From Caecitellus pseudoparvulus (lineage: Eukaryota; Protista; Bigyra: Bicosoecida), in NCBI GenBank assembly GCA_965644315.1, contig CBFFRQ010000033.1:1-51491 (forward strand): 51,491 nucleotides of DNA, given 5' to 3'. Numbering within the stretch: the first letter of the stretch is position 1; each line of letters opens with the position of its first letter. This document shows, one piece after another, positions 1 to 33,975 of this stretch. The notes beneath the pieces were generated by a model. The model searched no databases. It worked only from the letters and a program-made list of their open reading frames with translations, and had not been told where the DNA came from. A program made the position numbers and the translations under genes.

Positions 1-135
1 TCCAGCAGCACGGGCTGCCCCAGCACGAGCTGCTGCGAGCCCGCACCATTGGCCACCTGGGCGACAGGGAAGAGGCGGTCGGCATGGCTCCATGGCACAG
101 GCGGCACGGCGAGAGTGAGTGTGTTGAGGCTGGGG
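1..135. repeat. Direct repeat copy A of 5823-5957
   Basis: Manual alignment shows 5 mismatches in 135 nt, all synonymous in the minus coding frame. Confidence 0.95.
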
Positions 136-1295
136 GCCAAGGCAAGCGTTGCGGGGGCGCTCAGAGGGTGGGATGTGGCGCTGGGTGTGCAGGAGCACAG
201 GCCACCCTGCATGGCGAGCACGGCACCTGAGTCAACTGCTGCGCTTGACGCTTGGGATACGGCAGACAGAGTGCAGGACTCATCCACGGGACCAGCTTCA
301 ATGCGCAGCAGGTCCGAGCTCAGCTGTACTGGGGAGGAACCATTCCACTGGCCAGGCACAACCAGCACGGACAGGGCGGCGCTGGCCAGTCCTGATTGGG
401 CATCTCCCAGGCCCTCCATCCTCAGCACCAGCCCGGCCTGCACAGACTCCACAGTCGTGAAGGATGCAGGCCTCAGATCTGGCATGGTCTGCACGGCGCA
501 GGCGGTTGCGGCGGCCTCCGCCTGTGAGAAGCCGGGAGCTGGCAGCAGTGCGTGGCCGCCTTGTGGCATGAAGATGCGCGGTGTCAAGGCAGGTGGTGTG
601 ATATCCAGCACGCCCAGAGGGGCGATGACTGCTGTGGACAGACCTGCGAAGTTCATGGCGACAGCTGTGAGCCACAGCGTGTCGCCGCCCTCCAGTGCGC
701 TGGAGTTCAGGGTCACTTGAGCCAGGCGGCCGCTCTCTACCTGGTCAAGGTCTGCCCACAAGGCGCTAGATCGCACGGCGTCCCAGCTGCCCACTTCCCG
801 CATGTGCGGCATGGCTTGAGACCCCAGAGCCGTGGCACCCACTGTGAGTGTGAGGGAGCTGAGGCCGGCACCAGCATCCGCCCAGTTCGCCAGGGACAGC
901 TCCACATGGCTCATTGGCACGATGAACGGCGGGTCGCTGCCAGCCTGCGCCACCGCCTCTGCAAGCTGGCCAGCTGTGGTGTGGGCTGCACTTCCAGCAG
1001 GCAGAGCCGAGGCCTGCAGCTTGCGGGGCGCACAGGCGCTCGCGGCGGGAGCAGGCATGCGGAGGGTGCGGGTCCACGGCAGGGCTTGCTGCAGCGTGGC
1101 AGCTGGCACGGAGGCAGCGGTGGTGGTGCTGCATGCTTCCGCATCTGGGAGCAGGGCCAGTGTGCCAGGCAGTGGGTGTGAGCGCACGAGGCGGACAGTA
1201 GGGGAGGACAGCTGCAGGAGCCCGCCACCCGTCTTGCTCACCGCGACTTGCACCCGGAAGCCCTGTGCACTTGCCATGTTGGCATGAACTGTATG
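1..1295 (-). CDS. 5'-truncated paralog of the C-terminal region of the giant lectin/FN3-repeat protein; runs off the left edge
   Basis: Absent from the ORF track because it has no stop in the window. My translation of the minus frame is open from 1295 to <1 (ATG at 1277): ...SAQGFRVQVAVSKTGGGLLQLSSPTVRLVR...VGATALGSQAMP...SALEGGDTLWLTAVAMNFAGLST...EGLGDAQSGLAS...VANGAGSQQLVLGQPVLL. This is collinear with the giant ORF over ~7110-5823. Confidence 0.8.
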
Positions 1296-1418
1296 TCACA
1301 CAGAGCAAGACAAGGCTGGCAATCTGTGAAGCCCATACACGCTACGCAACCCCCAATGTTGAACGGCAAGACATATGGCACGGCACTGCATTCCTTGAGT
1401 CGTCTCGTCTCACGCCTC

Positions 1419-4181
1419 TTATCCCATGAACTCTTCAAACATCGCGTCAAGTTCGTCTTGCTCCGTGAGCGGCTGATCTGAGCCCGCTGCCTCTTCTGGT
1501 TTGGCACCAGCATTCTCCAAGTACACCCCCTCCTCATCGCATGCTTTCTGCAGGATATCCCAGTGCCCCCGCAGGTTGGTGCCGTCCACGATGCGGATGC
1601 CCAGCTGCCCCTCCACATGTTTTCGCATGCCGTCTGGGACTGTGTGCGTCAAGGCAATCATGGCGCCGCCATCCTCAACGTGAAACTTCTCCCCCCCGAC
1701 GTAGGCCTGGAAGAGCCTGTCCCATGCTGGCATCTGATGAGGACTTAGTTTGCGCTTGTTGTACATCGCTTTCGCGGCAGCAATCAAGTCACCCACAGCA
1801 CGCACGACGGGCACGTGCCTTCGCTCGATGTCCTCCCGCTTCGCTCTGCCATACGGCTCCACACCCATCAAGCCTTCCACTGCCGTCCGCACCGCGGCAG
1901 CTCCCGCTTTGCTCTCGTCCCCTTTCTCCAGCGTCTTCTGGTTGGCTCGCTTCACCTGCACGCGCATGATCCGCACTGTTGTCACGCGGCCCTTCACTTC
2001 GTAGGACACCCGAATCACGTCGCCACCGTAGGCATCTGGGAGCTCCTTCATCCAGAATGAACCCTTGCGGAGAGCCAAGTATTCCTTGAAACTGTCGCCA
2101 GCCTGCTCAAGAGCCTCGTACGCAGCTCGTGCACGTGCACGCCAATCTGCCTCAGCCCCGGCTGCCTGGCCTCCACCGCCTGCTCCGCCAGCTCCCGCTG
2201 CGGCGTGTGGTGGTCCAACACTCTCCGCTGGTGCAGCCGCTTGTGCAGGTGGGTCTGCTGTGCGGCCTGTCACGACCGTCATGCGCACCCCCGCCAGCTT
2301 CCCGCCTTCGGTGTCGCTGTTGCTGGCCTTGACGGCTTGCTTGGGGGGATCTGCTTCGCCTTCGCTGCTCTCTTCTTCTCCACCTTCGTCCTCCACGAGG
2401 ACATCACCATCTTGGTCTGGCATCCTTGCCAGGGCACGAGTAATGGGCAACTCGGCCCTCTCTCCGCACCCGTCATGTCGCATCCACACCATGATGTCGT
2501 CGTGCACATCCCCACGCCCAAACCTGCGGTACACTTCAAGGCTGGCGAGTCCCAGGCCTTTCCCGTGCTCCACAAGCCAACCTTTGTCGATGGCGTCGTC
2601 AATCAGTCTCGTAGCGGCCTTGGTGGCGGCATCTGTTCTCGCTGTTCCTTCCCCTGCTGCTGCAGCGGCTGGCTGCTCAGGAATCCCTGCGAGTTTTCTT
2701 GTGAACTTGTCTCTTGGTACGACGTAGTTTGAGGAGCGGAATCCGAGCGCCGTGGCTCTCGGCAGCTTTGCCCGCTTGGCAGCCGGCAAGCTCGCTAAGA
2801 ATGGGTCGATCACCTGCTGGAATAAGGTGCTGGGTGGGCTGCTGTCAGGGTGTCGCCGAGGTACTGGGAGGTCTGGCCAGGGCGCACCTGGAATCCAATC
2901 AGGCAGACACTTTCTTGCAGCACGCATCAGTTCCCGGGGTGTGTGCCCGTACAGCTCCAGGACCTGCTCCAGGGAGGACTTGAGCTTCTCCCCATCGCTC
3001 GTCTCCTCTTCCCCCAAGCGCTCCAGAAACATCGCGTCAAGCTTCTTCGCCATTTCCAGCGCTGCTTCTGACGCCTGCCTCTCCTCCTTCGCCACTGTAC
3101 CAGACGACTCCTGTGCTGCGTCCACCACTGCACCAGGAGTCTGCGCCTCTGCTTCCTCTCTGTACAGGGTGAATGAAGGGTCCACCGTCTTGCACGCGTG
3201 TGTGAGCAGGAAGGCCTTGAGGGACGTCTCCGTCCACACGGCACCTTCAATGCGCATGTGTTGGAATTTGGTCCCGTTCCAGTTCGCCCGCAGTGACGCA
3301 TGTGTGTACTCAGGTGGGAAATCATGGGGTGATCCGTCAGACAGGAACAGCTGTCGGGAGCGCTGAAAGCTTGCACAGATCACCATGCCAATGGTAGGAT
3401 CGTCCACGCCAAGGATGCCCTGCAATTGCCCATGCCATCGTTTGGCGAGGTTGGAGTCGAACTTGAGTCCCTGGAAGAGGTGTTCCGCTTCATCAACAAT
3501 TACGATGACCGCGATGCCAGCTTGCCTCAGTAAAGCGCTTGCGATGTCCAGCCGGTCATGATTCCCGGCATTCTTCACTGCTTCGCGCACTTCAGGTGAC
3601 AGAGCCTTGGTGCCGTCACGCAAGGTAAAGATGGCTGGAAGCTGCTCCTCGTGCACTTGTTCGTCTTCCGAACCTGTCGCATGGGTGGCGAGATTGCGGA
3701 GAACCTCTGCCACCTCTGGGTGTCGATGCAAGCGGCCAAGCTTGTTGGCGATGTTCTTGAAGAGCCACTCGTGGAAGTTCTTTGGGTCCGTGGAACTGCG
3801 TCGTTGGAGATCGATGCGGAAGCAGATTGTGAGCCTTCCGTCTGCCTCTTTCCTGTTGTCCTCCTCCATAACAGTGACAATCGCTTTGAAAAGGCGGGAC
3901 TTCCCGACGCCCTTTGGACCGCAGATCAAGCACGTCTGTGCCTCTTCATGTTCGTGCATGCTGTTTATCATGGCTACCATAGCAACAAACGCTGGCTTAA
4001 GGTGTTCCATGGGCAGAAACTTGGCAGCCTTGCTGAGCACCATCTTCTTCCACAGCTCTACAGCTTTCTTACGCAGGCGGTTTGGGTAGTCAAGAGGCAA
4101 TCCAGACCTGCACAGCCTCTCAAACGGCCCTATCTTGTGCCCACTGGCTCCAGCCTCCGTGGGTACTTCTGCTGCCGCCAT
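1419..4181 (-). CDS. P-loop (AAA+/STAND-like) NTPase fused to a C-terminal Mrr-like PD-(D/E)xK restriction-endonuclease-fold domain
   Basis: Intronless ORF of 950 codons from a GTG at 4271; first ATG at 4181. Walker A ICGPKGVGKS and Walker B VIVIVDEAE. The C-terminus GGDVI...RVQVKR...AGAAAVR...GGAMIALT...GIRIVDGTNL follows the Mrr catalytic-domain pattern. Confidence 0.75.
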   Translation of the reverse strand: MAAAEVPTEAGASGHKIGPFERLCRSGLPLDYPNRLRKKAVELWKKMVLSKAAKFLPMEHLKPAFVAMVAMINSMHEHEEAQTCLICGPKGVGKSRLFKAIVTVMEEDNRKEADGRLTICFRIDLQRRSSTDPKNFHEWLFKNIANKLGRLHRHPEVAEVLRNLATHATGSEDEQVHEEQLPAIFTLRDGTKALSPEVREAVKNAGNHDRLDIASALLRQAGIAVIVIVDEAEHLFQGLKFDSNLAKRWHGQLQGILGVDDPTIGMVICASFQRSRQLFLSDGSPHDFPPEYTHASLRANWNGTKFQHMRIEGAVWTETSLKAFLLTHACKTVDPSFTLYREEAEAQTPGAVVDAAQESSGTVAKEERQASEAALEMAKKLDAMFLERLGEEETSDGEKLKSSLEQVLELYGHTPRELMRAARKCLPDWIPGAPWPDLPVPRRHPDSSPPSTLFQQVIDPFLASLPAAKRAKLPRATALGFRSSNYVVPRDKFTRKLAGIPEQPAAAAAGEGTARTDAATKAATRLIDDAIDKGWLVEHGKGLGLASLEVYRRFGRGDVHDDIMVWMRHDGCGERAELPITRALARMPDQDGDVLVEDEGGEEESSEGEADPPKQAVKASNSDTEGGKLAGVRMTVVTGRTADPPAQAAAPAESVGPPHAAAGAGGAGGGGQAAGAEADWRARARAAYEALEQAGDSFKEYLALRKGSFWMKELPDAYGGDVIRVSYEVKGRVTTVRIMRVQVKRANQKTLEKGDESKAGAAAVRTAVEGLMGVEPYGRAKREDIERRHVPVVRAVGDLIAAAKAMYNKRKLSPHQMPAWDRLFQAYVGGEKFHVEDGGAMIALTHTVPDGMRKHVEGQLGIRIVDGTNLRGHWDILQKACDEEGVYLENAGAKPEEAAGSDQPLTEQDELDAMFEEFMG

Positions 4182-5383
4182 GCCTGCGAGATCATGCAAG
4201 GCGGGTTCTACCGGCGCAAGGGCTGGCAACGCGGCCGCAGCAGTAGCCCGAGATCTCGCAATGGACGCCACTTCACGTCACAAAGCGTGCACTCACTGCT
4301 TGCTCTTTGTGCTTCTCAGCCACCTTTACTGCACAGCTGGGACGCGCAGCTTCGAACTCGACGCCTACGCCGCTTGCAAAATGGTTCAATGCGGAAATCG
4401 AGCCGCCACACACCACGCAACGCCAGCTCCGGCTGCGCCCAGCCAGGCGCGCGCCAGGTGCAAGCAACCACCGAAGACAATGATGTGCTGCACATGAACT
4501 GTGATGGGCCGAGTGCGAAGGTGGCGATGGACGTGATGGGGGGTTTGGGTGTTGCATGGTGAATGCCGTTGCCAGCGAGAATGCTTCTGCGCTGAGCGTG
4601 AGGGGTGTGAAGCCCCCCTCAGACGTGCACAACGACGCAGGGTGAGCCTCCAAGCTCCCTGTACTCCCTCATGTCCCAGACTCGCGTGATCTCGACAGTT
4701 CATGCTACTTGGTCTCGAGATTACCCACCTGCGCCACTCCACAGCCAAGTCCGGCTCCAACGGCAGCTCCCACATACACGCTCCCACATGCTTCCTGTCG
4801 AGCGCATGGCGAGGCGCCTGAGCAAGGGGAGCCCTCCCTTGGCCATGGCCACCTACTGTGGTTGGTTGCAGCCCAGTCGCTTGGTGCTAGTACATTCCCC
4901 ACCGCCCTGCATGACTCTGTGGTCCTCAGACGAAGCCCAAAGTCATGTCATTTTCTTGGGCAAGTTGGTCACGTTTGCAATCACGAGCTCGGTAGGACTC
5001 GCCTTCAACGCGAGGCGGTGTCCCCACGTGCAGTTCGAAATGCTTGCATGTCCACCACCGAGTAGCACTGCGCCACAGGCCCCTGAGAGCTTGCGATCAG
5101 CGACAAACCCTGCTCAAGTGCCGGAATGGTGTGCTCTGTCACAGACGCTGCATGTGCGCCCTTGCCCACGTCCAACCTCAACATGAAGGTGACAAGGCAC
5201 TTTGCTACAGCTCAGCTACACGTTGTGTCTTGTAGTGTGGGGACTCCCCACATCTCCGCGTGCTCGGTCAAGTCCGCGATCTGCTGCAATGGGGTCAGAC
5301 CGGGTCGCGCAGCGAGCGTGCAGCACGACGACCGCATGGGAGACAGAAAGCTGCATTTGGAAGGTACACCACCTGCACAGCAG

Positions 5384-5957
5384 CTACAAAGCCACACACA
5401 GCACGCCCCGGACATCCTCCACGACACAGGAGGCGTCCTGTGCTGCATCACACAGGGCTCGGGCGCCGTCCGACGTGATCCAGGCGCCCCATGTCCCGGC
5501 TCCGTTCTTGGCCCGCACACTCACGAAGAGCGTGCCGCCAGACGGCCAGGTGAAGCCATCGTCAGCTTGGTCTGCCCCAGTCAGCAGGGCACTGGCTTCG
5601 AGGGAGTCACCCACGAGCCTGCAAGGCATGATGTCATCTCGCCCGGCGTCGGAGCCGGTGCTGCCAATGCACCACTCGTACTGCACGATGCCAGACTCTG
5701 CATCGGTTGCTAGGGTCCATGAGGCTTGGAACGCTACACCAGGACTGCCCAGGATGCAGTCCGCGTCCACGTCGCCGCCGTCACGTACTTCCACTTCGTC
5801 GCTCTAGGCCGGCGCCGTGCCGTCCAGCAACACGGGCTGACCCAGGACGAGCTGCTGCGACCCCGCACCATTGGCCACCTGGGCAACAGGGAAGAGGCGG
5901 TCGGCATGGCTCCATGGCACAGGCGGCACGGCGAGAGTGAGTGTGTTGAGGCTGGGG
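5384..5957 (-). pseudogene. Disrupted 3' end of the giant gene (1-nt frameshift at G-run 5954-5957, in-frame TAG at 5804-5806)
   Basis: The paralog has 5 G at this site and reads APSLNTLTLAVPP; here there are 4 G and the frame shifts. Downstream, LLDGTAPA*SDEVEVRDG...DAESGIVQYEWCIG...VSVRAKNGAG...SDG is a normal repeat module in frame after the TAG. Confidence 0.7.
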
Positions 5958-8900
5958 TAATGAGGAGAGAGCCTTGCACGGCCCAGCCCGAGGCTTGGTC
6001 CTCCCCGCAAGCACACAGGCCACCTTGGAAGGCGACCTCTGCGCCTGTATCGACCCGCCCAGCCACCACGCCTGATGCAGAGGAGGGCGAGCAGGTGTCG
6101 TCTTCGGCCAACACAGGCGCCAGTTCAGAAGGACTGGCAAGCACGGCAGCACTGGCGGTCGCGTTCCACGCCCAAGGGACGACCAGGACCGACAGAGCCA
6201 CAGTGGCAAGGCCGGATTGGGCATCTCCCAGACCCTCCAAGTGCAGGTTGAGCCCCGCTTGCACCGCGTCCAAGGCAAGGAATGAAGCTCCCTCAGCAGC
6301 TGCACCCGGCTGTGCGGCATCACATGCCGCAGAAGCCAGCTCGGCAGGTGTAGCTCCAGGCGGTGGGTAGGTGCTGGTGGTGGCGGACCAGACCGCCAAA
6401 CTGGGAGCTGCAGCTGGAGCGGTGGCATCCAGGATGCCGACAGGTGCAGCCAACACGGTGCTGAGGCCAGCATAGTTTGTCACCACTGCCGTGAGCCACA
6501 TCGTGTCACCGCCCTCCAGTGCGCTGGCGTCCAGCGCCACAGTGACCGTCCGGTCTGCAGACGCGCCCAAGGAGTCTTCCCAGGTTGTGGCGTTGGACAC
6601 CACACTCCAGTGTCCCACCTCCCGCACCCCGGGCATGGCTTGGGAGCCCAGGGCTGTGGCACCCACTGCAAGGTGCAGGGAAGCCAGGCCTGCTCTGTCG
6701 TCCGACCAGCCAGCCAGGCGCACGGAGAGGCGGGGCAGGAGGGAGATGAAGGGCATTTCAGCGGCAGCTGCACTGGAGACGATGGTTGCCACATCAGCGG
6801 CTGTCAGCTGTTCGGCTGCTGCGGGCGGCAGTTGGGCACTGGGCAGCTGGCGTGGCGCGCAGGCGCTGGGCGCGAGCGCTGCCAGGGGGAACAGTCGCGT
6901 CCACGGCTTGGCTTCCTGCAGGGCAGCTGCCGGCACCGCAGGCAGCGCACTCTGCCCGCTGCAGACAACCGAGTCTGGCAAGTGCACCAAGTGGCCCGCT
7001 GCAGGTGGCGTGCGGATGAGGCGGACTGTGGGGGACGTCACCTCCAGGGTGCCGCCACCAACCTTGCCCACCAGCACTCGCACTCTGAAGCTGGGCGCGC
7101 TCTCCAGCGCACCTGCCAGCTGCACGGCAACGGGCAGTCCCACGGCTGCAAAGGGCTCCTGCCACAACTCAGCAGCGGCCACGGAGCCCGAGGCTACGCT
7201 GGTCGTGCCCGCCTGGTCCACGGCCAGCACCTCCCATGCGAGGCCGCTCAGCGGCACAGACATTTCGTCGACGATGGGCAGGTGGAAGAGCACATCCTTG
7301 TGGCCCGCTTGCACCCAGCGCTGGGTGGGAGGAGACCAGGCTGCGCTGGACACCGGCAGGGGCACCTGTGGTCCCGTCGGCGTCGCAGCTTGAGGCTGCA
7401 CCTGCGCCTGCACCGCGTCCAGTACCAGGATGGGCGACATGAACACAGAGCGCGTCCCAGCGCCGTTCGTGGCACGCAGCAAAACGGCAGTCACGCCGTC
7501 GCCCAGGTCAGCAGGGCTGAGGCTCACGAAGACGGCGTCTGGGTTGCGGGTGACGAAGGGCGCGTCCTGCGCTGGCTGCCACTCAAGGGAGGACAGGGAG
7601 GACGCGGCACAGCCGGCCTTCAAGGGGCCCTGCAGCAGCGCTATGTCTAGCGCACTGATGCCGCTGGTGGTGTCCACAGGGGCGGGGAGACGCAGGGACA
7701 CGCCGGCCTGGGCATCGCCCACAACCAGCTCGTGTCGCAGCTCCTCGCCGCAGGCGACGTCGCTGCCACGCAGTCCAGGTGTCAAGGCGGCGGTCGATAC
7801 AACACCTGCTTCGGCAGCCGGAGCGGCGGCGGCGGCCAGCGCAGCATGCACGGCACCTGAGTGCAGGCCGGAAGCCCCAAACCAAGCCCCCTGCAGCATG
7901 GCCACGCTGCCGGTCCAGGCGGGCGCGGACCACGGCAAGTCCACACGGATGGCGGGGGACGCACCGACGACCTCGCCGCCGTCCTCCACAACCACTTGGA
8001 CGGAAGCCACCACGGCAGAGTCCTGAGGCATGGTCAGGCCTGTGAACGTCGCGTTGCCTGTGGAGACATACACGCCTGCCCGCGGGTTCTGCACTTCCAG
8101 GCTTGCGACGCTGATTTCCAGGGAGCCAAACACGCTGTCGGCCGCGGCCCCGGCAATGTGCCCCAGCGTTGCTACGAGGCTGGCGACGGGCGACGCAGAG
8201 GTGATGGTCCAGCCAACGCGCACCTCGGAGGAGCTGGGGGTGAACAGGGCTTCCTCGCCGTCGGTGCCGAGCACGAAGACCTCCGCGACAGGAGCGCCAA
8301 GTGCAACCTGCACTGCCGTCGAACGGCCTTCAGACACAGTACCTGCTGCGTTGCCGGACTGCACGACCACTTCAAAGACTGTACCAGCGGCAAGCGCCAC
8401 GTCCAAGCACAGATCCCCTGGCGCACACGCGACAGTCCACGTGGCTGAGGTGGCCGTGCCAACGTCTCGCAACGGTGCGATCCACGACGAGGTTGTGGCA
8501 TCCCACAGGCCCACCCAGTGCTGCAGCTCCGTGCCAGCCAGGGCGGCATCAGCGTCTTCCACTTGCCAGCAAGCCTCCACGCCACCCTGCTCTGCGGTCC
8601 ACGTGGCGTCAGCGAGGGTCTGCACGAGGCCTTGCCGGTGACCACACTGGGCGCCGGTGCGAATGGCGACGTAGGTTGGCACCGCATTGGACACGACGAA
8701 GCCATTGGTGGACACGTCTGTGACGAGGCCGGCGCTGGTCACGATGCGCAACACGCCGTACACCCAGCCAGTGGCGGTGGGGGGCAGGGCAACGAAGCAC
8801 TCGCCTGCTGAGAAGTCGTCCGAGTGTGGCACGTCCAGGAACGGCATGATGTCGACAGTGTTGGGAGCACTGCCCCACCCGCACTGCACGCCGACGATGT

Positions 8901-11900
8901 CGCTCTCTGCGTCGGTGGCCCGCAGCCACCTCAGCTTCGCGATGCCGTCCGCGACGAGCTGTGCGTCGGCCGTGGGCGAGACAGGTTTGGCAAGGGGCAC
9001 CGGGGCCAGCCCAGCGACATCCCACACAGCCTGCACCTTGGGCGGTGTGGCGTCAGCGGGAACGCCCACGAGGGCGATGCTCGCCAGGCGCCCGGCCGCA
9101 TCCCCGGCTGCCACGCCGATGTACCCTCGCTGGCCGTGCTGCAAGCGAGCAGCTGAGGCTCCCAGCAAGTCCAGGGCGCTGGCCGTGACCCCAGGCGCCA
9201 GCGCCAGTCGTGTGCCGTCCGAACGCAGCACCTGCTGCCCGCCCAGCCCCGTGCCGACAGCATGCACCAGGGTGTCGAGAGACGTCTCCGCATCCGTTGC
9301 AGCCGAAGCGTTGAGCGCGAAGGTGATGCCCGCGCCGGCACCAGACACAGCGCAGGGCAGGCACAGGCCGACACTGTCCCCCGAGCCAGCCTTGAAGGTC
9401 CCTAGGGGGCAGGGCACGCACGACCCGTCGTGGCTGAAAGTCCCTGCCCCGCACGTGCCGGATGCCGTGGGCGGGGTGGGCAGTGTGTAGGCAGCAGGGC
9501 AGGAGCCAGCACATGGTACACAGGACCCGGTGCTCGCGTCCAGTCTGAAGCCTGCCTCGCAGTGGCACGTACCACCGCCGCTTGCGAAGTCGGGCACAAA
9601 TGCCGCATTGCTGTCCACACACGCACAGGTTGTGCGGTCTGTGCCGGCTGGCACAACCGCGAGCGTGGCTGCTTGCAGGCGCAGGGAGCTCGCGACGTCG
9701 GGGGCGCTGTCGTCGCAGGTGATGCCGTCTGAAGCCACGTGGGTAGTCAGGCCCGCCGTGTTGGTGGCCCACACTGAGGTAAACACAGCCTGACCGGGCT
9801 GCAAGTTCAAGCCACTGGCCGTTGCAAAGGTGCGGCGGCCCACGGAAGATCGCGGGATGATGTCGCAGTCCCCAGCAGCATGGCCTGCGCACCACTCGTA
9901 CCTGGTGATGCCTCCGGCGTCAAAGAAGCTGCCCCAAGTGGCTCGCACAGCAGAGCAGTCAGACGTCGCGTCATCATCGACGCCGACATGCATGGAATCC
10001 CACACCGTGCCGGCCAGGGGGCCAGTCGTCACTACTGCGGCTGCGTTGGAGGTGACTGTCGTGCTGAGCCCGGCCGCGTTCACAGCCGTCACCTCGCACG
10101 TGTACTGCTGCTGGTTAGCCAGCTCTGATCCAGGGGAGAAAGTGAAGGTGTGCGTGGCAGGGGAGGCGGCCAGGACCTGCACCGGACCGGAGCGGACTGC
10201 CCCACGGGGACCACCCTCGCGCAACACGACTTCGTAGTGTGCAATGGGCGCGACATCGTCAGAGAAGCCCTCCCAGGAGCAGGCAAAGGCGGAATCGTCG
10301 GTGGTGAAGGACAGGTCGCTCTGCACTCCGTCCCACGCCCTGCCAGGCAGAGGCGGCGTGACGTCAGGGATGACGGCGCGGGACACAGTCTTGCTGGCAT
10401 GCCCCGCCGCATTCAGGCCCACCAATGACACGTGGTACTCCTGCCCTTGCACGAGGTCCAGCTCCACAAACGTCACATTGGTCACATGGAACGTGTCTTC
10501 GAACACGCGCACTTGCTGGCCGTAGGGACTGCTGCCGAGGGCGGCAGTGTACGTCACTTCAGCGGAAGGGGACTCGGCATCATCAAAGGCGGCCCACGTT
10601 GCGCTGATGGTGGTGAGTGAGGCGATGTAGAGGGTGTCTGGGAGGCCCGATGCGGCGAGGTTGATCGCCCCTGTGAGCCCAACTGCAGAAGGCGTGGATG
10701 CCGTCGTGTCGGGTGTGAAGTCTGTGTAAAACGCTCGGGTGGTAATGCCGATGCGGGCGAGAACTGTGACAGTGTACAGCGTCCCGGGCGCGAGGGTCAG
10801 GCCGTACACGCTGGCATGTGTGGCTGTGCCCACATCGGTCAGCGCCTTCACGTCCCCAACCCCAGCAGCAGTGCCCAGGGCCCACTGGAAGGTGAAGTGC
10901 GGCACAGCTGTGCCGTTCTCAGTGTCCCCGGTGCTGGTCCAGGTCTCCCCAGGTGGCGCCAGGGTGTTTGACAGCACACTCCACTCAACTTCTAGATGCT
11001 TGTCCGAGCTGGTGTAGGTGGCCAGCACAGGGGATGGCTCTGGCTCCACAAGCACGCCACGCCCGTCCAACTGCACCGCGCCAGTCGTGTCGATGACGAC
11101 ACCAGGCGCAGTCACGCTTGTCGTGCGCCCTGCACGGTTGGTCATGTACACTGTCACATAGTACTTCTCGCCATCCACAAGGGCAGCGTCAAGGACGCAA
11201 GAGGTGGACGTGCCGACGTCAGTGCGGGGCACGATGTTACATGCGCCTCGGAGGGTGCCAGCGCAGCAAGCGAAGGACTGCAGCCCAGACTCCTCGTCAC
11301 TCCACGCCTCGAACACTGAGTTATTGCTGAAGACCCAGCTGGCACTGAGGTTGGCGGCATGCCCCTGGTATGGCGCGTCTACGTGGTGCGTGAGGGTGTT
11401 CCACACCGCCCCGGCGACGGGACTGCTGCCATCCACGAGCAAGCCATCAGACTCCAACAGCACGGACGCGTCACCGACGTTGTTCACTGCTCGCACTTGC
11501 ACACAGTAGCGCAAGCCGAATGTCAAGGGCAAGCCCTCTGCAGTGAAGGTGGTGGCGAGGGGCGGTGCGACGTCTGTCCAATCCCGCACATTGCGAGAGG
11601 TGACGTCTCCGTTGTCGCACCAGCGAACGGCATACTGGTACTTGGCGATGGCACCGTCGTCCTCCAGGAAAGCGTCCCATTGGAACTTGAGGAAGGTGGC
11701 GGCAGGGGTGAAGTCTGCATCGCCAGTGACACCCGGCGTGAGGTCCAGCACCGTGCCGCCCACAGCAGGCTCGGGGGGAGTTCCGTCAAACACCACGCCA
11801 TCAGACACCTTGTCCACAAACAAGCCATTAGTGGACACTGCCCTGACAATGACGAAATACGTCGTGCCCTGGGTCAGCACAATGGTGGCTGGGTTCGTGG

Positions 11901-14900
11901 TGGCGCGGGTGTCAGAGCCTACATACGTGAGGGGCAGGATGTCAAGGGGGTGTGCGGAGAAGTCGTCCCCAGGCGCGGGCGCAGAGCTGGACACTCCCCA
12001 CAAATACGAGACGATGCTGGCCTCACCAGCGGTGAAGCTGCCCCAAGACGCGACGAGGCTGGGCTGGGAGTGCCCGTCCTGGTCGGCCTCCAGGTCGCGT
12101 GTGGGATCCACGTCGTGGACGTACGCGGCGGCAGCGGATGGCCGCCTGGATTCGATAGGCAGGGGCTGGGCTGGTGCAGGGATGATGTTCTGCGCGCGGT
12201 CTCGGCAGCGCACCGTCAGAAACGCAATGACAGCATCAGGTAGTTGGGGAATGGTGCCGGAGACGACGAGGGAGATGGAGTTCGAGCCGTACTGCCCTGG
12301 CACAGGCGTTTCAGGGTGCAGACGAGAGAAGGGAATCATGCTCTCGGGCGCAGCATCTGTGCCCGCAGCAACTTCACAGAAGGCAAAGCCAGACTCGGCG
12401 TCGACAACGGTCACTCGTGCCCGGAAGAAGGTGCGGTTTTGCAGCGCGGCCACGGGCGTCTCATCTGCGTCAAAGTCACCAGGGTTGCCGACGATGCCAG
12501 GGACGCCGTACTGCAGCCACGGGTTGTGTCGGTCGCCGAGGATCTCTGCCGAGACGGAAGGCGCGACTGTGTCCACGTACACACCGTCGCTGATGGAGGT
12601 CGTGGACAAGCCTGCCTCGTTCTCGGCCGTGACAATGAGGTACACCATCGTGCCGGAGCGCACCGGGTCCACAGTTGTGAACGTGTGGTTCAGCACCGGA
12701 CCAAGGTCTTCAAATGCCACAATGTCGTCTACGGGTCGGCCCAAGACGCTGCCCAGCCCCACGCGGTAATTGATAAGCGGTGAGATGTCCTCCGGAAACT
12801 CTGGCCAGTGCACATGGAAGACCTTTGAGTCGTCCGTGAAGTCAATGTCACAGGTGGTCCCATCGCCTCCCAGCGCTGGCTCCAGGAAGGCACCACAGGT
12901 GGAACGCCCATCAAGGGGCTCGGCCAGGCCGGGCGGGGTGTTATCGTACGTCAGCCCATCAGATGTGCGAATGGTCGTCAAGCCTGCGGCGTTGATGGCT
13001 CGCATGTGCACAAAGTACTGTGTGCCGGCCACCAGACCCAGTGTGGGCACTGAGTGCACCCCAGTGGGTGCGACGTCCTTCCACTGCCCAAGGGGCACCC
13101 CCGTGTCGGTTGGGTCACACAGGTCTGGGTCAGAGGAAGTGGACGTGATGCAGTACTGGTACTCGAGGATGCCGCCACGAGAGCTCTCCCTGTCTTGGAA
13201 GCCGTTCCACTGCCAAGCAGGGTTGTTGGACGCCTGGAAATCCACATCTGCCGTATCATCTTGTACTGTGATGCTGTAGGAGGGCAGGTCCACTTCGCGG
13301 ACGCCCGCACGGGGCGACACGCCCACCGCATCCGGCACAGCCCGAGGCGGTGACAGGTCCACGACAAAGCCCGCAGAGCAGGACGTGAAGCGTTCGCCCT
13401 CTACGTTGCGAGCCTCCACCACCCACTTGTATCGCGCGCCCTGAGTGAGGGCTGCAACAGGTGGCAGCGTGTACTCCACTGCACCTGCCTGGCCCATGCT
13501 CAAAAAGCCGGCAGCAGCAACGTGCTTTGCATATGGCGTCCGTGCCCGCTTCATGACGAGGGGCGCGTAGTCCTGCAGCCACAGGCTGCGTGGGTTGGCG
13601 TGCGTTGGCAACATGCCTTCGGCGGGAGACGTGCTGCCTGGGGTCAGGACCGACTCACAGGCATAGGAGGGGACACCTGACGCCCCAGCGGGCCACGTGA
13701 CGGCGACGAAGTGCCCCGCAGGGCACCGCATGGGGGGCTTCGTGCAAATAACTGGCTTGTGCAGGGCGCAGGCGCGGGGGTGCAGGCGGGGAGTAGCAGT
13801 TCCCCCCTCCACTGCCGCACAGTCCCCGCCCGCGGCCAGATCAACGTCCGCCGCCCACGGCCACAGCCCCGTTGCAGTGACATCCTTGCCAAGCGTGCGG
13901 GGGGTGTAGGTGGACCGCCAGGTGCCGTTATGGCGTAGGTCAGACAGGCCCGTCCAGCAGGACCCCGAGCACAGCGGCGCGACAGCTTTGAGCACAGAGT
14001 ACGTCGGGCTGCTGAGCGCCACGCCCTCGTCGCTTGCACACACGCCATCGGCGGCCGACCCAGCAGAAGCCCCTGCTGAAGCAAAGGCACAGGCAAACTC
14101 GCCAGCTGACAGCTGCACCAGCACGTGCCCTGTGGCGCACGTGAACACGGGCGCCTCGCACACGGCTCGGGCGGAAGCTGTGCTGCCGGAGCCTGGGGCA
14201 GACACCTCTGCCGTGGAAGCCTGCACTTGGATGCGAGCAGCGTCCGCCCGACCTGCTGCCGAGACGCCAAATGGCGCCAAGCTGAAAGGCAGGGCCCAGT
14301 CACCAGCCGCAGCTCCATCCACGCCCATGGCCCCCTGTGCGAACTGCTGTGCATACTGGTGAGCGCCCATGCCCCACCAGAACTTGATGCCGGCGGGGTC
14401 ACCTGCGCTGTGCTGTGCGCCGATCCAGCACTGGCCTGTGCTGCACGTGCTGGCGACTGCGGCCATGTCATCACTGCCAAAGGCTGCAGCGGGCACGCCG
14501 CCGAGGGCCATGCACGTCGCGTCCACAGAGGCAAGGTCGGTCATGCCGCTGCGCCGCAGGCAGCGCGCAGGGGCACCTGGGGTGACGTACACGGAATACC
14601 CCGGCGGGCACGATGCCACTGCCTGCTCACACAGGTACGGCAGCTCCGTCAAGTCGGGCTCCAGGCGGACCTGGGCCGTCATGGTGGCGGTGTCCTGGTC
14701 CACTGCAACAGTGGACAGAAACAACTTGGTGCCAGGAGCAGCGCCGGACAAGTCAGTGGGGTTGTTCAGGGGCAAGCCCGAAACAACACTTGACGAAGTG
14801 TGGGGGTGGGGCAAGGGGAAGGAGGTGGACCACAAGCTGGGCGCCTGGACGGACATGCCCAGCCAGCAGCGCATGCCCTTGTCAAAGCATGCGTACTGCA

Positions 14901-17900
14901 GGGCACGGAGCTTGACAGCGTCGTAGATGCCGAGGGACGCCAGGCTGGCACCCTCCGCGGCACAGGAGGCTTCCGCCGCCTCCCACGTCGCTGCTGTCTC
15001 CACGAACTTCACACAGGACGATAGTGCGCCGTCTGTGCCACGCGCCAGGGTGTACCCTGCAGGGCACTTGAGCAGCGTGCCGGCTGTGTCGCCTTGCAGG
15101 GCAGAGCCCAAGCACGTGTCCTCGTCTGTGGAGGAGCGCAGCACCTGCAGGCCCACCCGCACATCCAGGCTGTCACACGTGACGTCAAAGTCAGACATGG
15201 ACACCTTCAAGCCGGTGTGGGAGTTGGCTGCCTCAGACAGCAGGTCCCCCGCAGTGAAGGCCCCGAACGGCGTGATGTCCGTCTCCGTCTGCAGCGGAGT
15301 CACCTGCCCAGGGGTCATGGCCGGCAGCAACAATGGCTGCGCGTCAGAATACCCAGGGCATGTCGCTCGTGTGCCGTCGCACGTCGGCGCCAAGCGGCAC
15401 TCCGACTCCCGCCCAGCATTACAGGGCTGGTTGTCGGCTGGCATGTATCTGGTGTCGAAGCACCCGCCGTCGCCGTTGCAGCTGTTGTCAATGTGGCAGT
15501 CCCCAGTCTCACACGAGTAAGGTGTGCCGGTGCAAATGCCTGCAATGCACGTGTCGTCAAAGGTGCACATTTCGCCGTCGTCGCAGCCCAGGCCGTTGGG
15601 GCGTGTAGACCACGCTGTGGCATCCTTCAGCACGTCACAGTACTGGCAGCCAGGCTGGTCGGGGCTCACCTCGTTGTGAGCGTACACAACGCCGTCAATG
15701 AGACAGCCGCACGACTTGCTGCCGCCACCCAGGTCCTTCACGCCACCCAAGAAGCCTGGCGCCAAGTCACAGCCGCCTTCTCCGTCGCACACCTCGCAGT
15801 TTTGCGCGTCATCGCCAGTCCACTCGTACGCCAGGCATGTCGTGTACAGGGTGCCTTGGCACAGCCCCGCGCCGGTGCAGGTATCGTTGAAGGTGCAGGA
15901 CAGCTCATCATCACAGATCTTGTCCTCCTCCAGGCTCCACGTCTCAAACCCGCCGTCATCCCGCGGGTCACAGCGGTAGCACTGAGAGTGCACGTCCACG
16001 TCACTCTCGCGCGGCTTTCCGGCCAAGAAGGGGATGCACTCGTCCACCCCCAGCGCGTTGCGAATGTAGCAGCTGTCCACGAGGGGGCAGTGCGTGCAAC
16101 GGAAGCGCAAGTAGGCGTGTCCTGGCTCGCCAGGGGCGCCGGCCATGGTCTCAGGGTGGGCTGTCACGCCACCTGCCCCCACACTGCCCAAGGTCAGTGT
16201 TGGGTGCCCTGTGCCGCTGATAAGGAGTGATGGCAGGTAGTCGTTGCTGCCGCCACCTGCGCCGGAGACGGCTGTTCCAGGCGCAGTGGCGCCACTCCCC
16301 CCGCCCAGCAGACCCTGCCCTCCGGACGGCGCGTACTCTGCGCAAGTGCCACCATTGCAGATGTCGCCGTCAGCACCACCTCCCAGCACACGGTCGCCCA
16401 GCGCACCCTGCGTGACATGGTTAGGGTCGGCAGGGTCGCCGACGCCACCTTCGCCCGCCTCGATGAAAGTGCCGCCACCACCCCCTGTCGTGGACCCCGC
16501 AGCTTCGCCGCCGGCCCCGCGAGCCTGCAGACCACCGCCACCGGCACCGCCACTGCCGCAAGTGCTGGCGCCATAACCACCGCCGCCACCCCCACCCACG
16601 ACGATCAACTCATCGTACAGGGAGGGGTAGAAGAGGGCAGTGCGCTGTCCACCGCCTCGGTTGGGCAGCTGCGTGCCGCCTGGTGCGAGGGGGTACCCCA
16701 GGCCAAAGCCGTTGGTGCCGTTGGCCAGAGCATCTGTGGCAGACATGCCAGGGCCCAGCGTGAGGGCGGGGGAGGACAGAGGGTCTGTGCTGGGGGCAAA
16801 CTTGCTCCCCACATCGCCTACAGACACCACCAGGTCCCGACCAGGCACCATCTGCACCCGGGCCGCAAAGTAGCCCCCGCTGCCTCCCAGGCAAGGCACG
16901 CTGCCAGTGGGGTCCAGGCCAAGTTGCCTGCGCCCAGGCGAGCCTCCAGCACCGTACAGCGCCACATCTGCGGCAATGGCTCCGGGCGGCACCTTGAGAA
17001 TGTGCACACCCGTGCCCATGATGGGCAGGGAGGGCAGCAACTCACACCGCGGCGGCGCAGGGGAGAGCTGCTGGATGGCGACGTGGCCTCGCAGGAAGCC
17101 AGGGCGACCTGCCGTGGCGCCGATCCACTTGTTCAGGGGGTCGCCTGGGGCCGTGACACTGCCGCCGACCAGGCGCCCGAATGACACACGGGCCGCCTGC
17201 AAGTAGCTGGAGCCGCCACCGCCGCCGCTGACGGCGCCAGCCAAGACCCCTGACGCAGCCCCCGCACCGCCACCGTAGTACCCGCCACCTCCGCCGCCGC
17301 CGTGGCCCACTGCCACGAACTCGGAGCAGGCAGACACGCCAGCGCGGTTGCGGGCTCCAGCCAGGCCCCACGTACAGGCGTCAGCGGAGGTGGCGCCGGA
17401 GCTCCGCACGACACCGCCAGCACCATGTCCTGCTTCCAGCAGGGTTGTCTGCAGGTGCGAGTTGAGGTTGGTGCCACCAAGCCCGCCGTAGGCAGTGGCA
17501 AAATCCGAGCCTGAGGAGGTGAAGGTGGACACGGTGCCCTCCCCCGCATCATGGGAGCCGCCGGGGCCGCCATGGCTCATACCGCCGCCGCCGCCACCAC
17601 CCGCTACGATGAGCTCCTGGAGGGAATCCACTGCCGCGTCTGCGGGGAGCACTGTGCTGCGCACTGACAAGACGGCAGATCGGTCTCCACCCTGCCCACC
17701 TCCCTGGTGGTCCTTGCCTGCGCCGGAGTCCAGCGCCACACGGGAGGCAGCTGAGGCCCACGCTGGGTCCACCGCCTCCCAGCCCATGCGCGCGCCACCC
17801 ACCGTGACGACCACCGAGTCCCCCGCAGAGATCGCCAGGAACCCTGAAGCGCTGGCACCGCCGCCACCTTTGCCGGGCAGTGGGCGGACAGAGCCTCCAC

Positions 17901-20846
17901 CGGCGCCCCACGTGCTGAGGCGCAGGCGCCCAACCCCTGCGGGAGCTGTGTACACGCACATCTGGCCAGGCTGGTGCAAGTGCACGGTGCTGCCCACCAC
18001 GCTGCCGGGTGTGTTGGCCCCCGTCGTGTCACATGGGGGAATGTACTCACAGACGTATCTGCGAGCAGTGCTGGGGGACGGGTCCACGTGCAGCTGGCCA
18101 TAGCTGCTGCTGAGGTACGCTCGCGACCCAGTGGAGAAGCCGGCAGCTGGGTGGCAGTCACCACACTCAACTTGAGACATGTCCCACAGGGTGCCCTTCG
18201 CATAACGTGCCGTGTCCAGCTTGCCAAGGGCAGTGTGCGCCCACAGGGACCCGGCCGGGTCGCTGTTGTCCAGCCACCGCCAGGTGGAGCCGCCCTCAGA
18301 AGCCTTGGCGCCCACCCAAGCTCCGGAGGTGGTGGAGTGGCTGCCGTCGTGCAGAGAATCCGCGCCCAGTGCTTCGTGCACGACGGCCAACTCCAAGGCA
18401 TCGTGCACGGTCCAGAGTTGCGCGTGGGCGTGCTTGGCCTTGCAGTTGGAGGCCGCGACAGCGAAGGTCGCGGGAGTCTGCTCCACGATCAAGCAGGTGC
18501 CGGTGGTGGGGGAACGGAGCCACCCGGCGGGGCAGGTGCTGCCCACCTCACACGCGACGTACTTCTTGGAGGTGCTGCACAGCTCGGCCGCCAGCTCGGT
18601 GTCGGATGGTGTGGAGGACGGGGAGAGACAGAATTCCCCTGGGGTGGCGCCGAACGTCACGCCTGCGATGGCGCCGTCGTCCAGGCTGCCGAAGTTGAGC
18701 GTGCCTGCGTCCAGGCCAGTGGCCGAAGCAGAGGACCCAGTGCCAGGCCGCCACATAATGCTGTGCACGGTTTGCGGCTCCACGTGGCCGCCTGTCCACA
18801 CGCCGTCTCCGCGGGCAAGGACCGCTGCTACGTGGGAGTTCCACCACTGGATACTGCGGGAAGTCCAGAGACGAGCAGGGGACGCCACGCGAGGGCTGTC
18901 GGCTGGGGCAGCGGCAGCGCAGATGTCTGACGCATCCGCTGCGCCAGATCCAGATGGCACCTCAACCAGCTTGATGCACTGCCCGGTGGTGGGGTCCACA
19001 GTGTCGCCGTCAGGGCACAGCGGCGGCGGCGCCACACACACGAAGCCGCCCTCAGAGAACAGCCCAGTTGTGTTGCACGGCGCCGGCTCCAGCCGCCCAA
19101 TGTAGAAGGAGCTGCACTTCCCAGTGCTGCCGTCAGGCACCCCTCCCCTCCACAGGTTCCCCGGCACCGGCTTGCCGTCCCCCCACACCCACTGGCCATT
19201 CTCCATGTGCGCGCCAACCGCAACACGCTGCCCATAGCGTGGGCGGCCAGTGTTGAACTCTTGCAAGAGCACGTGGCGCAGCCAGTCCCAAGGCTGGTCA
19301 CCATGGTCGACAGGTGCTGCAGGGGGGTAGGCCAGGTGTCCGCCCTCAGCGGCACACTGTGCCTCCAGAGTGTCCCACGACACCTCCGAGGCCGTGCCCG
19401 GCACGACGTCCAGGTGAATACCGCAAGATGTGGCGGTGGGGTTGGATATCCACTTTGCAGGGCACCCGATGGGCCGCACAGCACACACAGGGAGGGCGGT
19501 CGTCTCGTCGGCACAGTCAGTGGCATGCAAGCCTCCGCTCACGCCCAGCGACACACAGTTCAGGCCGATATCGGGCGGCGTGCTCCAGCTACCGGAGGGC
19601 GGCGCGGCGATGATGTCGTTGGCCGGGGCATTGTCCCCCGTGCCGTACCACATGTGCCCGCGGACGGAGGGGAAGCCGACGCCGGCGCCCATCCAAGCCC
19701 GCTGCATGTCAGGTGCGGCAAAGTGCGTCGTAAGCTGCCCCTGGAACCACGCCAGCTCGGCGGCGGAAGAGGGGACAAAGAGGGACGAGCCAGGGAATGC
19801 ATCGGCACAGTGAGCCAGAGCGTCCGGCTGGGACATGAACGCTGCGCCCCAGCCAAAGTGCACACAGGCGCCGGAGAAAGGCGACGAAGCCTGGAAACCT
19901 GGCGGGCAGTGTGCGACAGTCATCCGGTCCAGGCGAAGCTCCTCCCCTGGTGCAGGGGTGGCAGTGGGAGTGGCTTGGAGCCTTCGGGCCTGCTGCTGCT
20001 GCTGCAAGGGTTGCGTCAGGGACTCTGCAGGTGCTGGCGTGGCGGAGCCTGCTTTGGACGCGTCAGGCTGTGGCTGCAACGACGGCGATGCCTGCGCTGA
20101 CAGCTGAGCCGGCAGCGGCGCATGTGATGGCAGGGGCGAGGGGCTGGCTACAATAGGGGCATTGTAAGCCGGGGCGCTGGGGCCTGCAACCTGCAAGGCG
20201 TCTTCGCACCAGGTTTTCGGCTGCACACACACTGTGCGTGCCTGCGAAGAGCAGGGCTGACTTTTCACAGACCCCCTCGCGTGCAGGACAGCGCATGTGC
20301 CAGCCGGCACGGTGCTCAGACCCTTGAAGAATGCCATGGCCAGCTTGGGGTCCCTGACTGCCCCCTCGAAGCCGCCGGGCCAAGTCCAGGCGCCGGGCTT
20401 GTCGGGGGTGCCCTCGCGTTTCGCCAACCACAGCGGGAACTTGGAATGTGGCACCATGCTCTGCAGGCGCAGGCCGGAGCGCATGTCCACTGGCACTGTG
20501 CCATCAGGGCATGTTGCAGTACCGAATGCGCTTGCTGGCTCTGGCACGACGAGGCAGCTGGGCAGCTGGGCCGGCGATCTGTTGGGAGCGGAGCGTGCCT
20601 TCGTCGTGATGGTCGGCAAGTTGCGGGGGGAACGGCGGGAAGCTCGCACGCCGTCACTTACACAAACTTCTTGTCCACGTGGTTAGTATCCATCATTGCT
20701 GCGGGAGGGGGTGGGAGGACGCGGAGGGTGCCTGCACAGTGATGGCTTGCCGCTGCAGCAGTGCACGAACTGGAGCCGCCGCCGACATGTTGGCTGCTGG
20801 CTGCCGTGCCGACGGCAGCCAGGCCAAGCAGTGCCAGCCAAAGCAT
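5384..20846 (-). CDS. Giant (~5,100 aa if repaired) secreted/surface protein: signal peptide, multiple C-type lectin domains, two Gly-rich domains, Cys-rich repeats, many FN3/Ig-like repeats
   Basis: Exon 1 is 20846-20662 (MLWLALLGLAAVGTAA signal peptide). Intron 20661-20579 (GTAAGT...CAACAG) joins in frame to the 4971-aa ORF. CTLD patterns: CPxGW...TWEAAEASCAAEGASLAS...CWLG. WGAGGG...ELIVAGGGGGG domains. CDDxxxCTxxDTC repeats. Repeated W.xF.D.ESGI..Y.W..G...Y.V.V.A.N.AGL....SDG...DxTPP modules. One CVPCPLGTFK-type Cys repeat. The homologous frame continues to a TAG at 5384 across two lesions. Confidence 0.85.
5823..5957. repeat. Direct repeat copy B of 1-135
   Basis: 130/135 nt identical by manual alignment. 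Confidence 0.95.
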
Positions 20847-33700: not shown

Positions 33701-33975
33701 CGGCACCGCCCTCCCGCATCAGCATGGTGACGGAGGAAGGTGGCGCTTCTGCCACGCGGCCTGGCACCCGCACGGGAGCTGGGACCGCCCTGTCCATCGA
33801 TGAAGTCCCATTTGAAGACGAGGATGGCATGGCAGCGCTGGAGAGCAAGACTCCTGAGGCAGACAGGCAGCAGGACGACGTCGTGCAGATGTTGCCGTCG
33901 CGCTACACGAAGGCTGCCGCGCCAGCATCTCCGCACAAGCCCCAAACTCCAAACAAACCTCGACACGGAAGCTGA
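27760..33975 (+). CDS. Large low-complexity coiled-coil protein with 7 IQ calmodulin-binding motifs and FAM13/Sld2-like helical motif; possibly centrosomal/ciliary
   Basis: Introns 27851-27923, 27988-28080 and 28142-28257 link ATG 27760 in frame to the 1935-aa ORF. AATRIQAMARGRAARQRV occurs 7 times. KADLRRFESAYLAQHGG...EYKAYTRLK motif. YAADLQRQM and LAEQIEAKKRR segments recall CSPP1/CCDC66. Confidence 0.75.
32455..33290 (+). repeat. Coding minisatellite with 126-bp unit (one 123-bp variant), ~6.6 copies, each encoding one IQ motif plus a Gly/Ser spacer
   Basis: Near-identical units cctgccgacgagcatggtgctgcgacccggatccaggccatgg...gggtcagagggtgtgggcggt. Confidence 0.97.

Follow-up and report, generated by a model that had tools for sequence, protein, structure and literature searches.

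How did a gene joining an ATPase to a putative nuclease come to lie between giant lectin genes in the bicosoecid protist Caecitellus pseudoparvulus, and what might its product do? The gene in question is found on the minus strand of contig CBFFRQ010000033.1 (assembly GCA_965644315.1), the whole of which, at 51,491 nt, was analyzed and is referred to here as the window; all coordinates are those of its forward strand. Reasoning by analogy with known systems, the protein is tentatively read, with a probability of about 0.45, as an intracellular conflict protein of Crinkler/RHS architecture lacking a header, one that would serve in defense against invading DNA or in cell suicide upon infection.

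The ATPase-nuclease gene is an intact, real gene. The open frame at 1419-4271 (minus strand) reported in the first-pass annotation, made from the sequence alone, is indeed open. The same annotation had described the gene as intronless, a view refuted by a 113-nt intron at 4184-4296, inside of which the GTG at 4271 falls. This intron corresponds to a gap in one contig of run X1 (a library of uncertain kind), is bounded by GT and AG on the minus strand and ends 2 nt before the ATG at 4181. The same arrangement, namely CAG, two further nucleotides and ATG, preceded at 79-113 nt by a donor-like site, recurs in 17 other fetched loci, the position of the intron being conserved across the family. Because a stop codon lies six codons 5' of the donor in the in-frame upstream exon, the intron belongs to the 5'-untranslated region (UTR), and translation begins at ATG 4181. 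This is most likely the true start, and is common to the paralogs and to protein P0001. The coding sequence accordingly comprises a single exon (1419-4181, with TAA at 1419-1421) and specifies a 920-residue protein beginning MAAAEVP, from the initial methionine of which residues are numbered here (numbers in the first-pass annotation are higher by 30). The non-coding first exon spans at least 4297-4414, as delimited by the run X1 contig (record 6) and the in-frame stop. Contigs from X3, an RNA metatranscriptome, and from X4, a probable RNA run, cover the coding region and the lectin ends, while no RNA-run contigs were found over the spacer at 4344-5327. Such placement is consistent with transcription of the gene or of close paralogs, although contigs cannot prove this. 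With a GC content of 59% (65% at third codon positions), as compared to 66% (75%) for the neighboring lectin gene, the gene differs modestly in composition, which does not demonstrate a recent foreign origin.

As modeled, the N-terminal 560 or so residues comprise an AAA+ ATPase of the ORC/Cdc6 or archaeal STAND-like type, together with a lid and a winged helix. The ATPase core (3231-4028) contains Walker A (GPKGVGKS, 3920-3897; G88-S95) and Walker B (IVDEAE, 3500-3483; including D230 and E231) motifs that are both intact, as had been claimed earlier. This is followed by a helical lid (2907-3230) presenting a G-x-x-P motif (YGHTP at 2951), assigned from the structure model and the alignment, and by a winged-helix domain (2517-2828), inferred from full-length alignment to PAB2304, SSO1545 and ORC2. 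The Walker motifs, a lid with a GxP-type motif and a winged helix, as seen in STAND or ORC/Cdc6-like ATPases, were found. Pfam matches were obtained for AAA_22 (expectation value (E) 2.8e-8) and ATPase_2 (E 5e-8). Residues 18-561, modeled together with 19 paralogs (mean predicted local distance difference test score (pLDDT) 79; predicted template modeling score 0.79), were matched by Foldseek to archaeal ORC2 (E 2.8e-6), as well as to Drosophila ORC, PAB2304 and SSO1545, and by VIA-align to PAB2304 (Z score 14.1 over 323 residues), Cdc6/Orc1 (14.0), TnsC (13.8) and SSO1545 (13.4), with plant resistosomes following at Z scores of about 11-12. The AAA+ or STAND fold anticipated in the first-pass annotation was in this manner supported. 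The archaeal and bacterial STAND-like ATPases (PAB2304, SSO1545; ATPase_2) are the top matches for the combined ATPase, lid and winged helix-turn-helix (wHTH) unit, at Z scores of 13-14, yet share only 12-13% identity with the window protein, which is longer and comes from a gene with a eukaryotic intron. No prokaryotic sequence relative over the length of the domain was detected, with bacterial genome and metagenome contig collections not having been scanned, as the sequences in the nuclease alignment diverged too far for pattern scans.

Two further observations concern this module. In one subfamily (L015, L016, L031, L032, L043 and L048), the Walker B glutamate is replaced by aspartate or glycine in full-length and truncated copies alike, a change that, judging from sequence, may reduce ATP hydrolysis. 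At the other end of the protein, the structure model predicts a C-terminal amphipathic helix (1422-1463) belonging, together with the internal lid helix, to repeat family D7; positions 1415-1451 are 78% identical over 37 nt to the lid helix at 3005-3041. This second copy may have arisen by local duplication or may be a mimic with an autoinhibitory role. An amphipathic helix at the end of the protein is also seen in several distant members.

Downstream of the winged helix lies a putative nuclease that is split in two. A first helix carrying the conserved E577 (2410-2486), at or just before W566 of which the nuclease-less paralogs stop, is separated by a variable acidic and Ala/Gly-rich insertion (2151-2409) from a core predicted to adopt the PD-(D/E)xK fold (1512-2150), which presents E713, D721, Q742-x-K744, T845 and D866. 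Helix and core are some 130 residues apart, with the low-complexity part being variable. In an alignment of 21 sequences, most of which are 20-35% identical to the window protein (mean column identity, 29%), W566, E577, E713, G719, D721, R740, V743, T845, D866, L870 and W874 are invariant or nearly so, and Q742 and K744 are present in most sequences. The order E577, D721, Q742-x-K744 is that of Mrr-type nucleases in their QxK variant. As read from the alignment, conservation of the E, E, D, (Q)xK, T and D columns exceeds what chance would provide. The sequence motifs listed in the first-pass annotation (G..AE..I..AL, DAYGGDVI, RVQVKR, GAMIALT and GIRIVDG) are likewise present in that order, except that GAAAVR..V.G is conserved in the closest copies only.

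Structural comparison points in the same direction, at lower strength. A model of the last 243 residues (pLDDT 76), starting after the first helix, describes a mixed sheet with helices, the best match of which is AF1548 (Z score 5.8, below 8 and weak alone; root-mean-square deviation 3.6; 97 residues). PD-(D/E)xK nucleases dominate the further matches, namely CdiA-CT, Cdn1, VC1899, EcoT38I, Can2, MspJI, AspBHI, LlaBIII and the Avs3 and Avs4 nucleases, and Mrr_cat clusters in the Atlas match the model with template modeling (TM) scores of up to 0.58 by target, again weak alone. HHalign against 13 Mrr domains gave a score of 25 (E 0.004) over 34 columns corresponding to the last two strands only, the maximum for shuffled sequences being 18.9. 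Foldseek searches of the Protein Data Bank (PDB) and of viral models returned nothing below an E of 0.001. The restriction-nuclease fold expected by the first-pass annotation is favored by the prevalence of PD-(D/E)xK nucleases in the list, and not by Foldseek, for which E exceeded 0.03. Similarly, the term 'Mrr-like' used there holds for resemblance (the QxK motif, AF1548, MspJI, AspBHI and the Atlas Mrr_cat clusters), whereas the Mrr_cat (PF04471) hidden Markov model (HMM) was matched neither by the domain, 17 paralogs and 21 wider members nor anywhere in the genome. Scans of Pfam, PADLOC and PDB sequences with the C-terminal domain and two alignments also yielded nothing meaningful. Conservation of the catalytic columns is stronger evidence than are the fold scores. 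Taken together, the C-terminal domain very probably belongs to the PD-(D/E)xK superfamily, and the window copy is, going by its residues, probably catalytically competent.

How the protein relates to known systems was next considered. The domain order is that of the Crinkler/RHS class combining an NTPase, a helix-turn-helix and a restriction endonuclease (REase) (Zhang et al., 2016, as summarized in PMC5289972), to which, in the same summary, just over one quarter of Crinkler/RHS (CR) C-termini belong. Both are eukaryotic multigene families subject to recombination and containing pseudogenes. Unlike Crinkler/RHS proteins, the window family has no header and no Crinkler Pfam match, contains a nuclease split by a long insertion, occurs in a free-living marine host and includes repeated nuclease-less forms. 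Indeed, only 87 residues, which fold with the ATPase, precede Walker A, the upstream exon is non-coding, no signal peptide or hydrophobic leader was found at the protein N-terminus and the Pfam scan detected no Crinkler domain, so that the lack of a recognizable Crinkler header noted at the outset is upheld. The protein is an NTPase-wHTH-REase module like those of Crinkler/RHS proteins, and also resembles prokaryotic fusions of a STAND ATPase with Mrr, without being a Crinkler, given the missing header, and the likeness is drawn from architecture and features rather than from CR clade profiles. The ATPase fold, the nuclease model, the conserved columns and the features of relative P0014 (see below) bear out the Crinkler/RHS-like architecture that had been suggested.

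Other comparisons place the two modules separately. With Mrr-family nucleases (Mrr_cat PF04471; AF1548, MspJI, AspBHI and the Avs4 nuclease), the window domain shares the E..D..QxK order, the C-terminal T and I.xDG..L strands and the best fold matches, but it is not matched by the HMM, contains extra helices after QxK and has its first helix about 130 residues from the core. As in Avs3, Avs4 and NLRs, a STAND-like switch is combined with a nuclease effector; in the window protein, however, the nuclease is C-terminal rather than N-terminal, no TPR, LRR or WD sensor is present and PADLOC offered no Avs match. Finally, Tribolium Medea1 and Wolbachia CifB combine CR-NTPase8 with CR-REase7 (PMC11342252), and share with the window protein the NTPase-REase architecture and a conserved glutamate on the first core strand, whereas the window protein has QxK in place of ExK, no histidine three residues further on and no evidence of drive. 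A literature search, which did not cover the 2016 survey of Zhang et al., returned no paper on the ATPase-nuclease family. Contributed here are a true start placed behind a 5'-UTR intron, a nuclease in two parts, residues of which persist in distant relatives, truncations that arose independently at the border between domains and an account of how the locus was duplicated.

Examination of the genome (30.6 Mb; 215 contigs) revealed at least 39 loci of the ATPase family (41 matches, two of them split), 19 with the nuclease core and some 19 without; broken paralogs were taken unrepaired. This agrees with the earlier expectation of a multi-copy gene and of no housekeeping ortholog. Catalytic D and K are kept in 14 of the 19 core-bearing copies. 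The fetched nuclease-less copies end at the domain border by differing routes: the W566 codon has become TGA in two copies on contig C31 and in copies on C119 and C90, and TAG on C53; two other stops occur at the border (C31/C105 and C170); and one nuclease-less clade (C81, C144 and C190) ends in a basic tail. On the family tree, nuclease loss corresponds to seven changes, at least four of which are forced by well-supported branches, with recombination inflating the number. Nuclease-less forms arose independently at least four times. Read-through of the stops was ruled out, given that the sequence past the stop decays, and no alternative C-terminal effectors were found in the shorter paralogs, which simply stop or end in the basic tail. 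For the ATPase module, the ratio of nonsynonymous to synonymous substitution rates (dN/dS) mostly falls at 0.2-0.65, the pure nuclease-less clade showing 0.26-0.36, and for the nuclease it mostly falls at 0.34-0.76; these sequence comparisons give good support to purifying selection acting on the two modules alike. The copies are also mosaic. The copy on C39 is 61-74% identical to the window gene over the ATPase core and 93-99% identical over most of the 3' third, in a comparison (in which part of the C74 row was read out of frame, slightly inflating windows 431-630) used only for the mosaic pattern. Full-length and truncated copies lie adjacent to one another on C113, C119, C83 and C53, and exchange sequence. 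A birth-and-death family in which modules are swapped between copies is well supported. One locus (L029; G000:C19:234136-236274) lacks the winged helix and first nuclease helix, has lost D and QxK and presents an altered Walker A motif, yet retains a 713-residue open frame; metagenome protein P0010 is near-identical to it.

Outside of the genome, a profile search against 1.84 billion representatives recovered about 33 true relatives. Four divergent members occur in one sample. A word search revealed a protein 82% identical in an assembly labeled Symbiodinium sp. KB8 and one metagenome protein. The KB8 assembly (GCA_905221625.1; L038) contains the ATPase-nuclease cassette at 87% DNA identity, lectin junction included, which probably derives from a co-cultured flagellate. 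Where readable, the neighbors of distant members are eukaryotic (NOP9, WDR90-like, COQ7, a kinase and ENTH), with none being shared between members. IMG/VR contained no relative of the ATPase module. Because a word search with the nuclease alignment returned a single fragment, no stand-alone nuclease relative was seen. Language-model features of P0014 resemble those of red-algal 'archaeal ATPase' clusters (0.96) and, with 185 features in common, those of a fungal Crinkler cluster (0.92), and its predicted structure matches a cluster combining an archaeal ATPase with Mrr_cat (361 residues; TM score 0.57).

The position of the gene between lectin sequences is explained by recombination between the lectin genes themselves. 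Positions 1-1285 (minus strand) hold the 3' portion of a type-B giant lectin/FN3 gene, matching the corresponding part of the full gene on contig C44 at 92% identity; they represent the start of the next tandem unit and are cut by the contig end. Positions 1-135 recur at 5823-5957 with 96% identity, defining a period of 5,822 nt, and the 5.82-kb unit is found as a three-copy array on C121, as well as on C86 (an allele; 97%), C74, C55 and a KB8 contig. On C44 and C37, complete type-B giant lectin genes, with frames of about 4,900 residues, are followed immediately by the ATPase-nuclease gene; this order and the 92% match of 1-1285 indicate that lectin B followed by ATPase-nuclease is the ancestral order. 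The block that underwent tandem duplication reaches from the middle of the lectin gene as far as the nuclease 3' UTR, its junction, where short microhomology occurs, lying near 1277-1290, with loose contig ends at 1276. Upstream of the first exon, a spacer and promoter region (4415-5383) common to lectin-linked copies leads to a type-B 3' end (5384-5957) recombined onto the neighboring type-A gene (5958-20649, minus strand), which encodes a giant C-type lectin/FN3/Gly-rich surface protein. Types A and B share 47-51% protein identity, and the last 570 nt of the giant gene in the window are of type B (90%). The presence of a type-B end on a type-A gene implies that the cassette arrived by crossover between lectin paralogs near 5957. 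Allele C86 keeps the frame across this crossover (open for 5,099 residues) and the window contig is frameshifted; here the TAG at 5774-5776 and the frameshift near 5960 mean either that the allele is truly null or that the assembly is in error where recombination took place. Six copies of the gene lie at contig ends, as collapsed arrays would be expected to.

These results do not support the earlier proposal that the gene arrived by insertion. The truncated paralog next to it is the next 5.82-kb unit, and begins about 130-140 nt after the stop codon rather than about 120 nt, as had been stated. Neither terminal repeats nor target-site duplications were found, the longest word shared by the edges at C39 (6 nt) being below random. 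A search for empty sites, as earlier suggested, did reveal a single exact one, on C146 (G000:C146:16217; L066:918), but this keeps the array junction and has lost 1352-4978 at short microhomology, and is a deletion derivative rather than a pre-insertion site. Type-B genes on C2, C45, C122 and C140 have no ATPase-nuclease neighbor, and their downstream flank is not shared with the filled sites. The gene is a passenger that reached the locus by ectopic lectin recombination and tandem duplication, not by jumping in.

An intracellular conflict protein is the favored reading because the anatomy of the protein, the conserved catalytic set, the absence of an export signal and the birth-and-death behavior all fit; AT-rich virophage-like DNA in the host genome also counts toward a defensive role. 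Based on the biology of STAND, ORC and TnsC proteins, an ADP-bound monomer would keep the nuclease off until a trigger was encountered; the likeliest candidates are foreign or exposed DNA, sensed via the winged helix, or else a viral protein. ATP-dependent oligomerization would then unite the nuclease domains, which would cut DNA, with the invader being destroyed or the infected cell killed. Nuclease-less copies could co-assemble as sensors or dampers. Several points weigh against this reading. The nuclease fold scores are weak (Z score 5.8; Foldseek E above 0.03; HHalign E 0.004 over 34 columns) and come from a C-terminal model without the E577 helix, catalytic D is lost in 5 of the 19 core-bearing copies, no sensor-repeat domain of the NLR/Avs kind is present and dN/dS exceeds 1 in no window. 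A more specific version, rather unlikely as it stands, is cell-autonomous immunity of the NLR/Avs type, in which a header-less, split-site nuclease would be triggered by giant-virus DNA or proteins, and nuclease-less paralogs would be sensors or dominant-negative dampers in mixed oligomers.

Other explanations draw on much of the same evidence. That the gene is a selfish poison-antidote element in the manner of Medea1 and CifB, with the full-length protein cutting the DNA of cells or gametes without a protective copy and nuclease-less twins serving as antidote, recalls the CR-NTPase and CR-REase architecture of Medea1 (PMC11342252) and the sequence exchange between neighboring full-length and truncated copies on C113, C119, C83 and C53. 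Still, no truncated twin adjoins the gene in the window subfamily, many of the truncated copies are solitary, the gene was lost by deletion at C146 and the ExK and His (+3) signature of CR-REase7/CifB is absent, making this explanation doubtful. A regulator that binds DNA or acts on chromatin, and whose nuclease fold is dispensable or of little catalytic importance, would account for the half of the loci that lack the core and yet remain under purifying selection (dN/dS of 0.26-0.36 in the nuclease-less clade), for the five full-length copies missing catalytic D and for the ORC/TnsC-like fold. Retention of catalytic residues in relatives at 20-35% identity is, however, hard to explain without catalysis, and such a role is distinctly unlikely.

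The top structural matches include TnsC and MuB, copies are dispersed and the neighbors of relatives are unrelated, as would suit a self-mobilizing transposon that pairs a TnsC-like ATPase with a TnsA-like nuclease and inserted between or into lectin genes. Against this stand the lack of terminal inverted repeats and target-site duplications (including the 6-nt edge word at C39), copy edges that vary by locus and include pieces of host genes, the absence of any DDE or recombinase domain, a retained intron, meaning that the gene was not retroposed, and the origin of the sole exact 'empty' site by deletion. A Tn7/Mu-like DNA transposon, with no common ends or transposase to be found, is largely refuted and very unlikely. 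Linkage to type-B lectin genes on at least six contigs, together with the Crinkler-like architecture, could instead speak for a toxin secreted or delivered against prey or competitors and coupled to the giant lectin; as the protein lacks a header, a signal peptide and any hydrophobic stretch at its N-terminus, as five type-B lectin genes have no such neighbor and as most family members have no lectin neighbor, this too is highly improbable. A housekeeping ATPase, be it an ORC/Cdc6 or DAP3 ortholog with a fortuitous tail, can barely be entertained: ORC and DAP3 do appear among structural and feature matches, yet identity to ORC subunits is 9-14%, no synteny exists, and the 39 divergent loci, several of them broken, and the approximately 33 relatives in 1.84 billion representatives refute it by copy number and distribution.

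Elsewhere in the window, a 1,935-residue ORF containing IQ calmodulin-binding repeats lies at 28168-33975 (plus strand). A decayed helicase-like ORF (42508-44394) precedes a 1,570-residue ORF (44401-49113, plus strand) with Mutator/MULE transposase and SWIM-like motifs and no Pfam match. At 50327, after a G run, the sequence changes abruptly to very AT-rich DNA that continues to the contig end (51491). This stretch has the appearance of an integrated mavirus-like virophage, seen at its terminal repeat and first gene, and fits the description of EMALE virophages (PMC8547959). Together with a 1,697-nt 18S gene, DNA that is rich in genes and in GC and matches in seawater runs, the AT-rich element suggests a host resembling the bicosoecid Cafeteria.

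According to PMC10945749, the defense of single-celled eukaryotes against viruses is, virophages apart, largely unknown. In the case of Crinkler/RHS modules, it has been proposed that these served first against intracellular invading DNA, with headers being gained later (PMC5289972). A header-less family such as the one considered here would test this proposal of a header-free, anti-DNA origin. An intact, probably expressed, single-exon ATPase-nuclease in an organism carrying virophage-like DNA is, moreover, easily tested, with the nuclease-less forms ending at the domain border offering natural controls.

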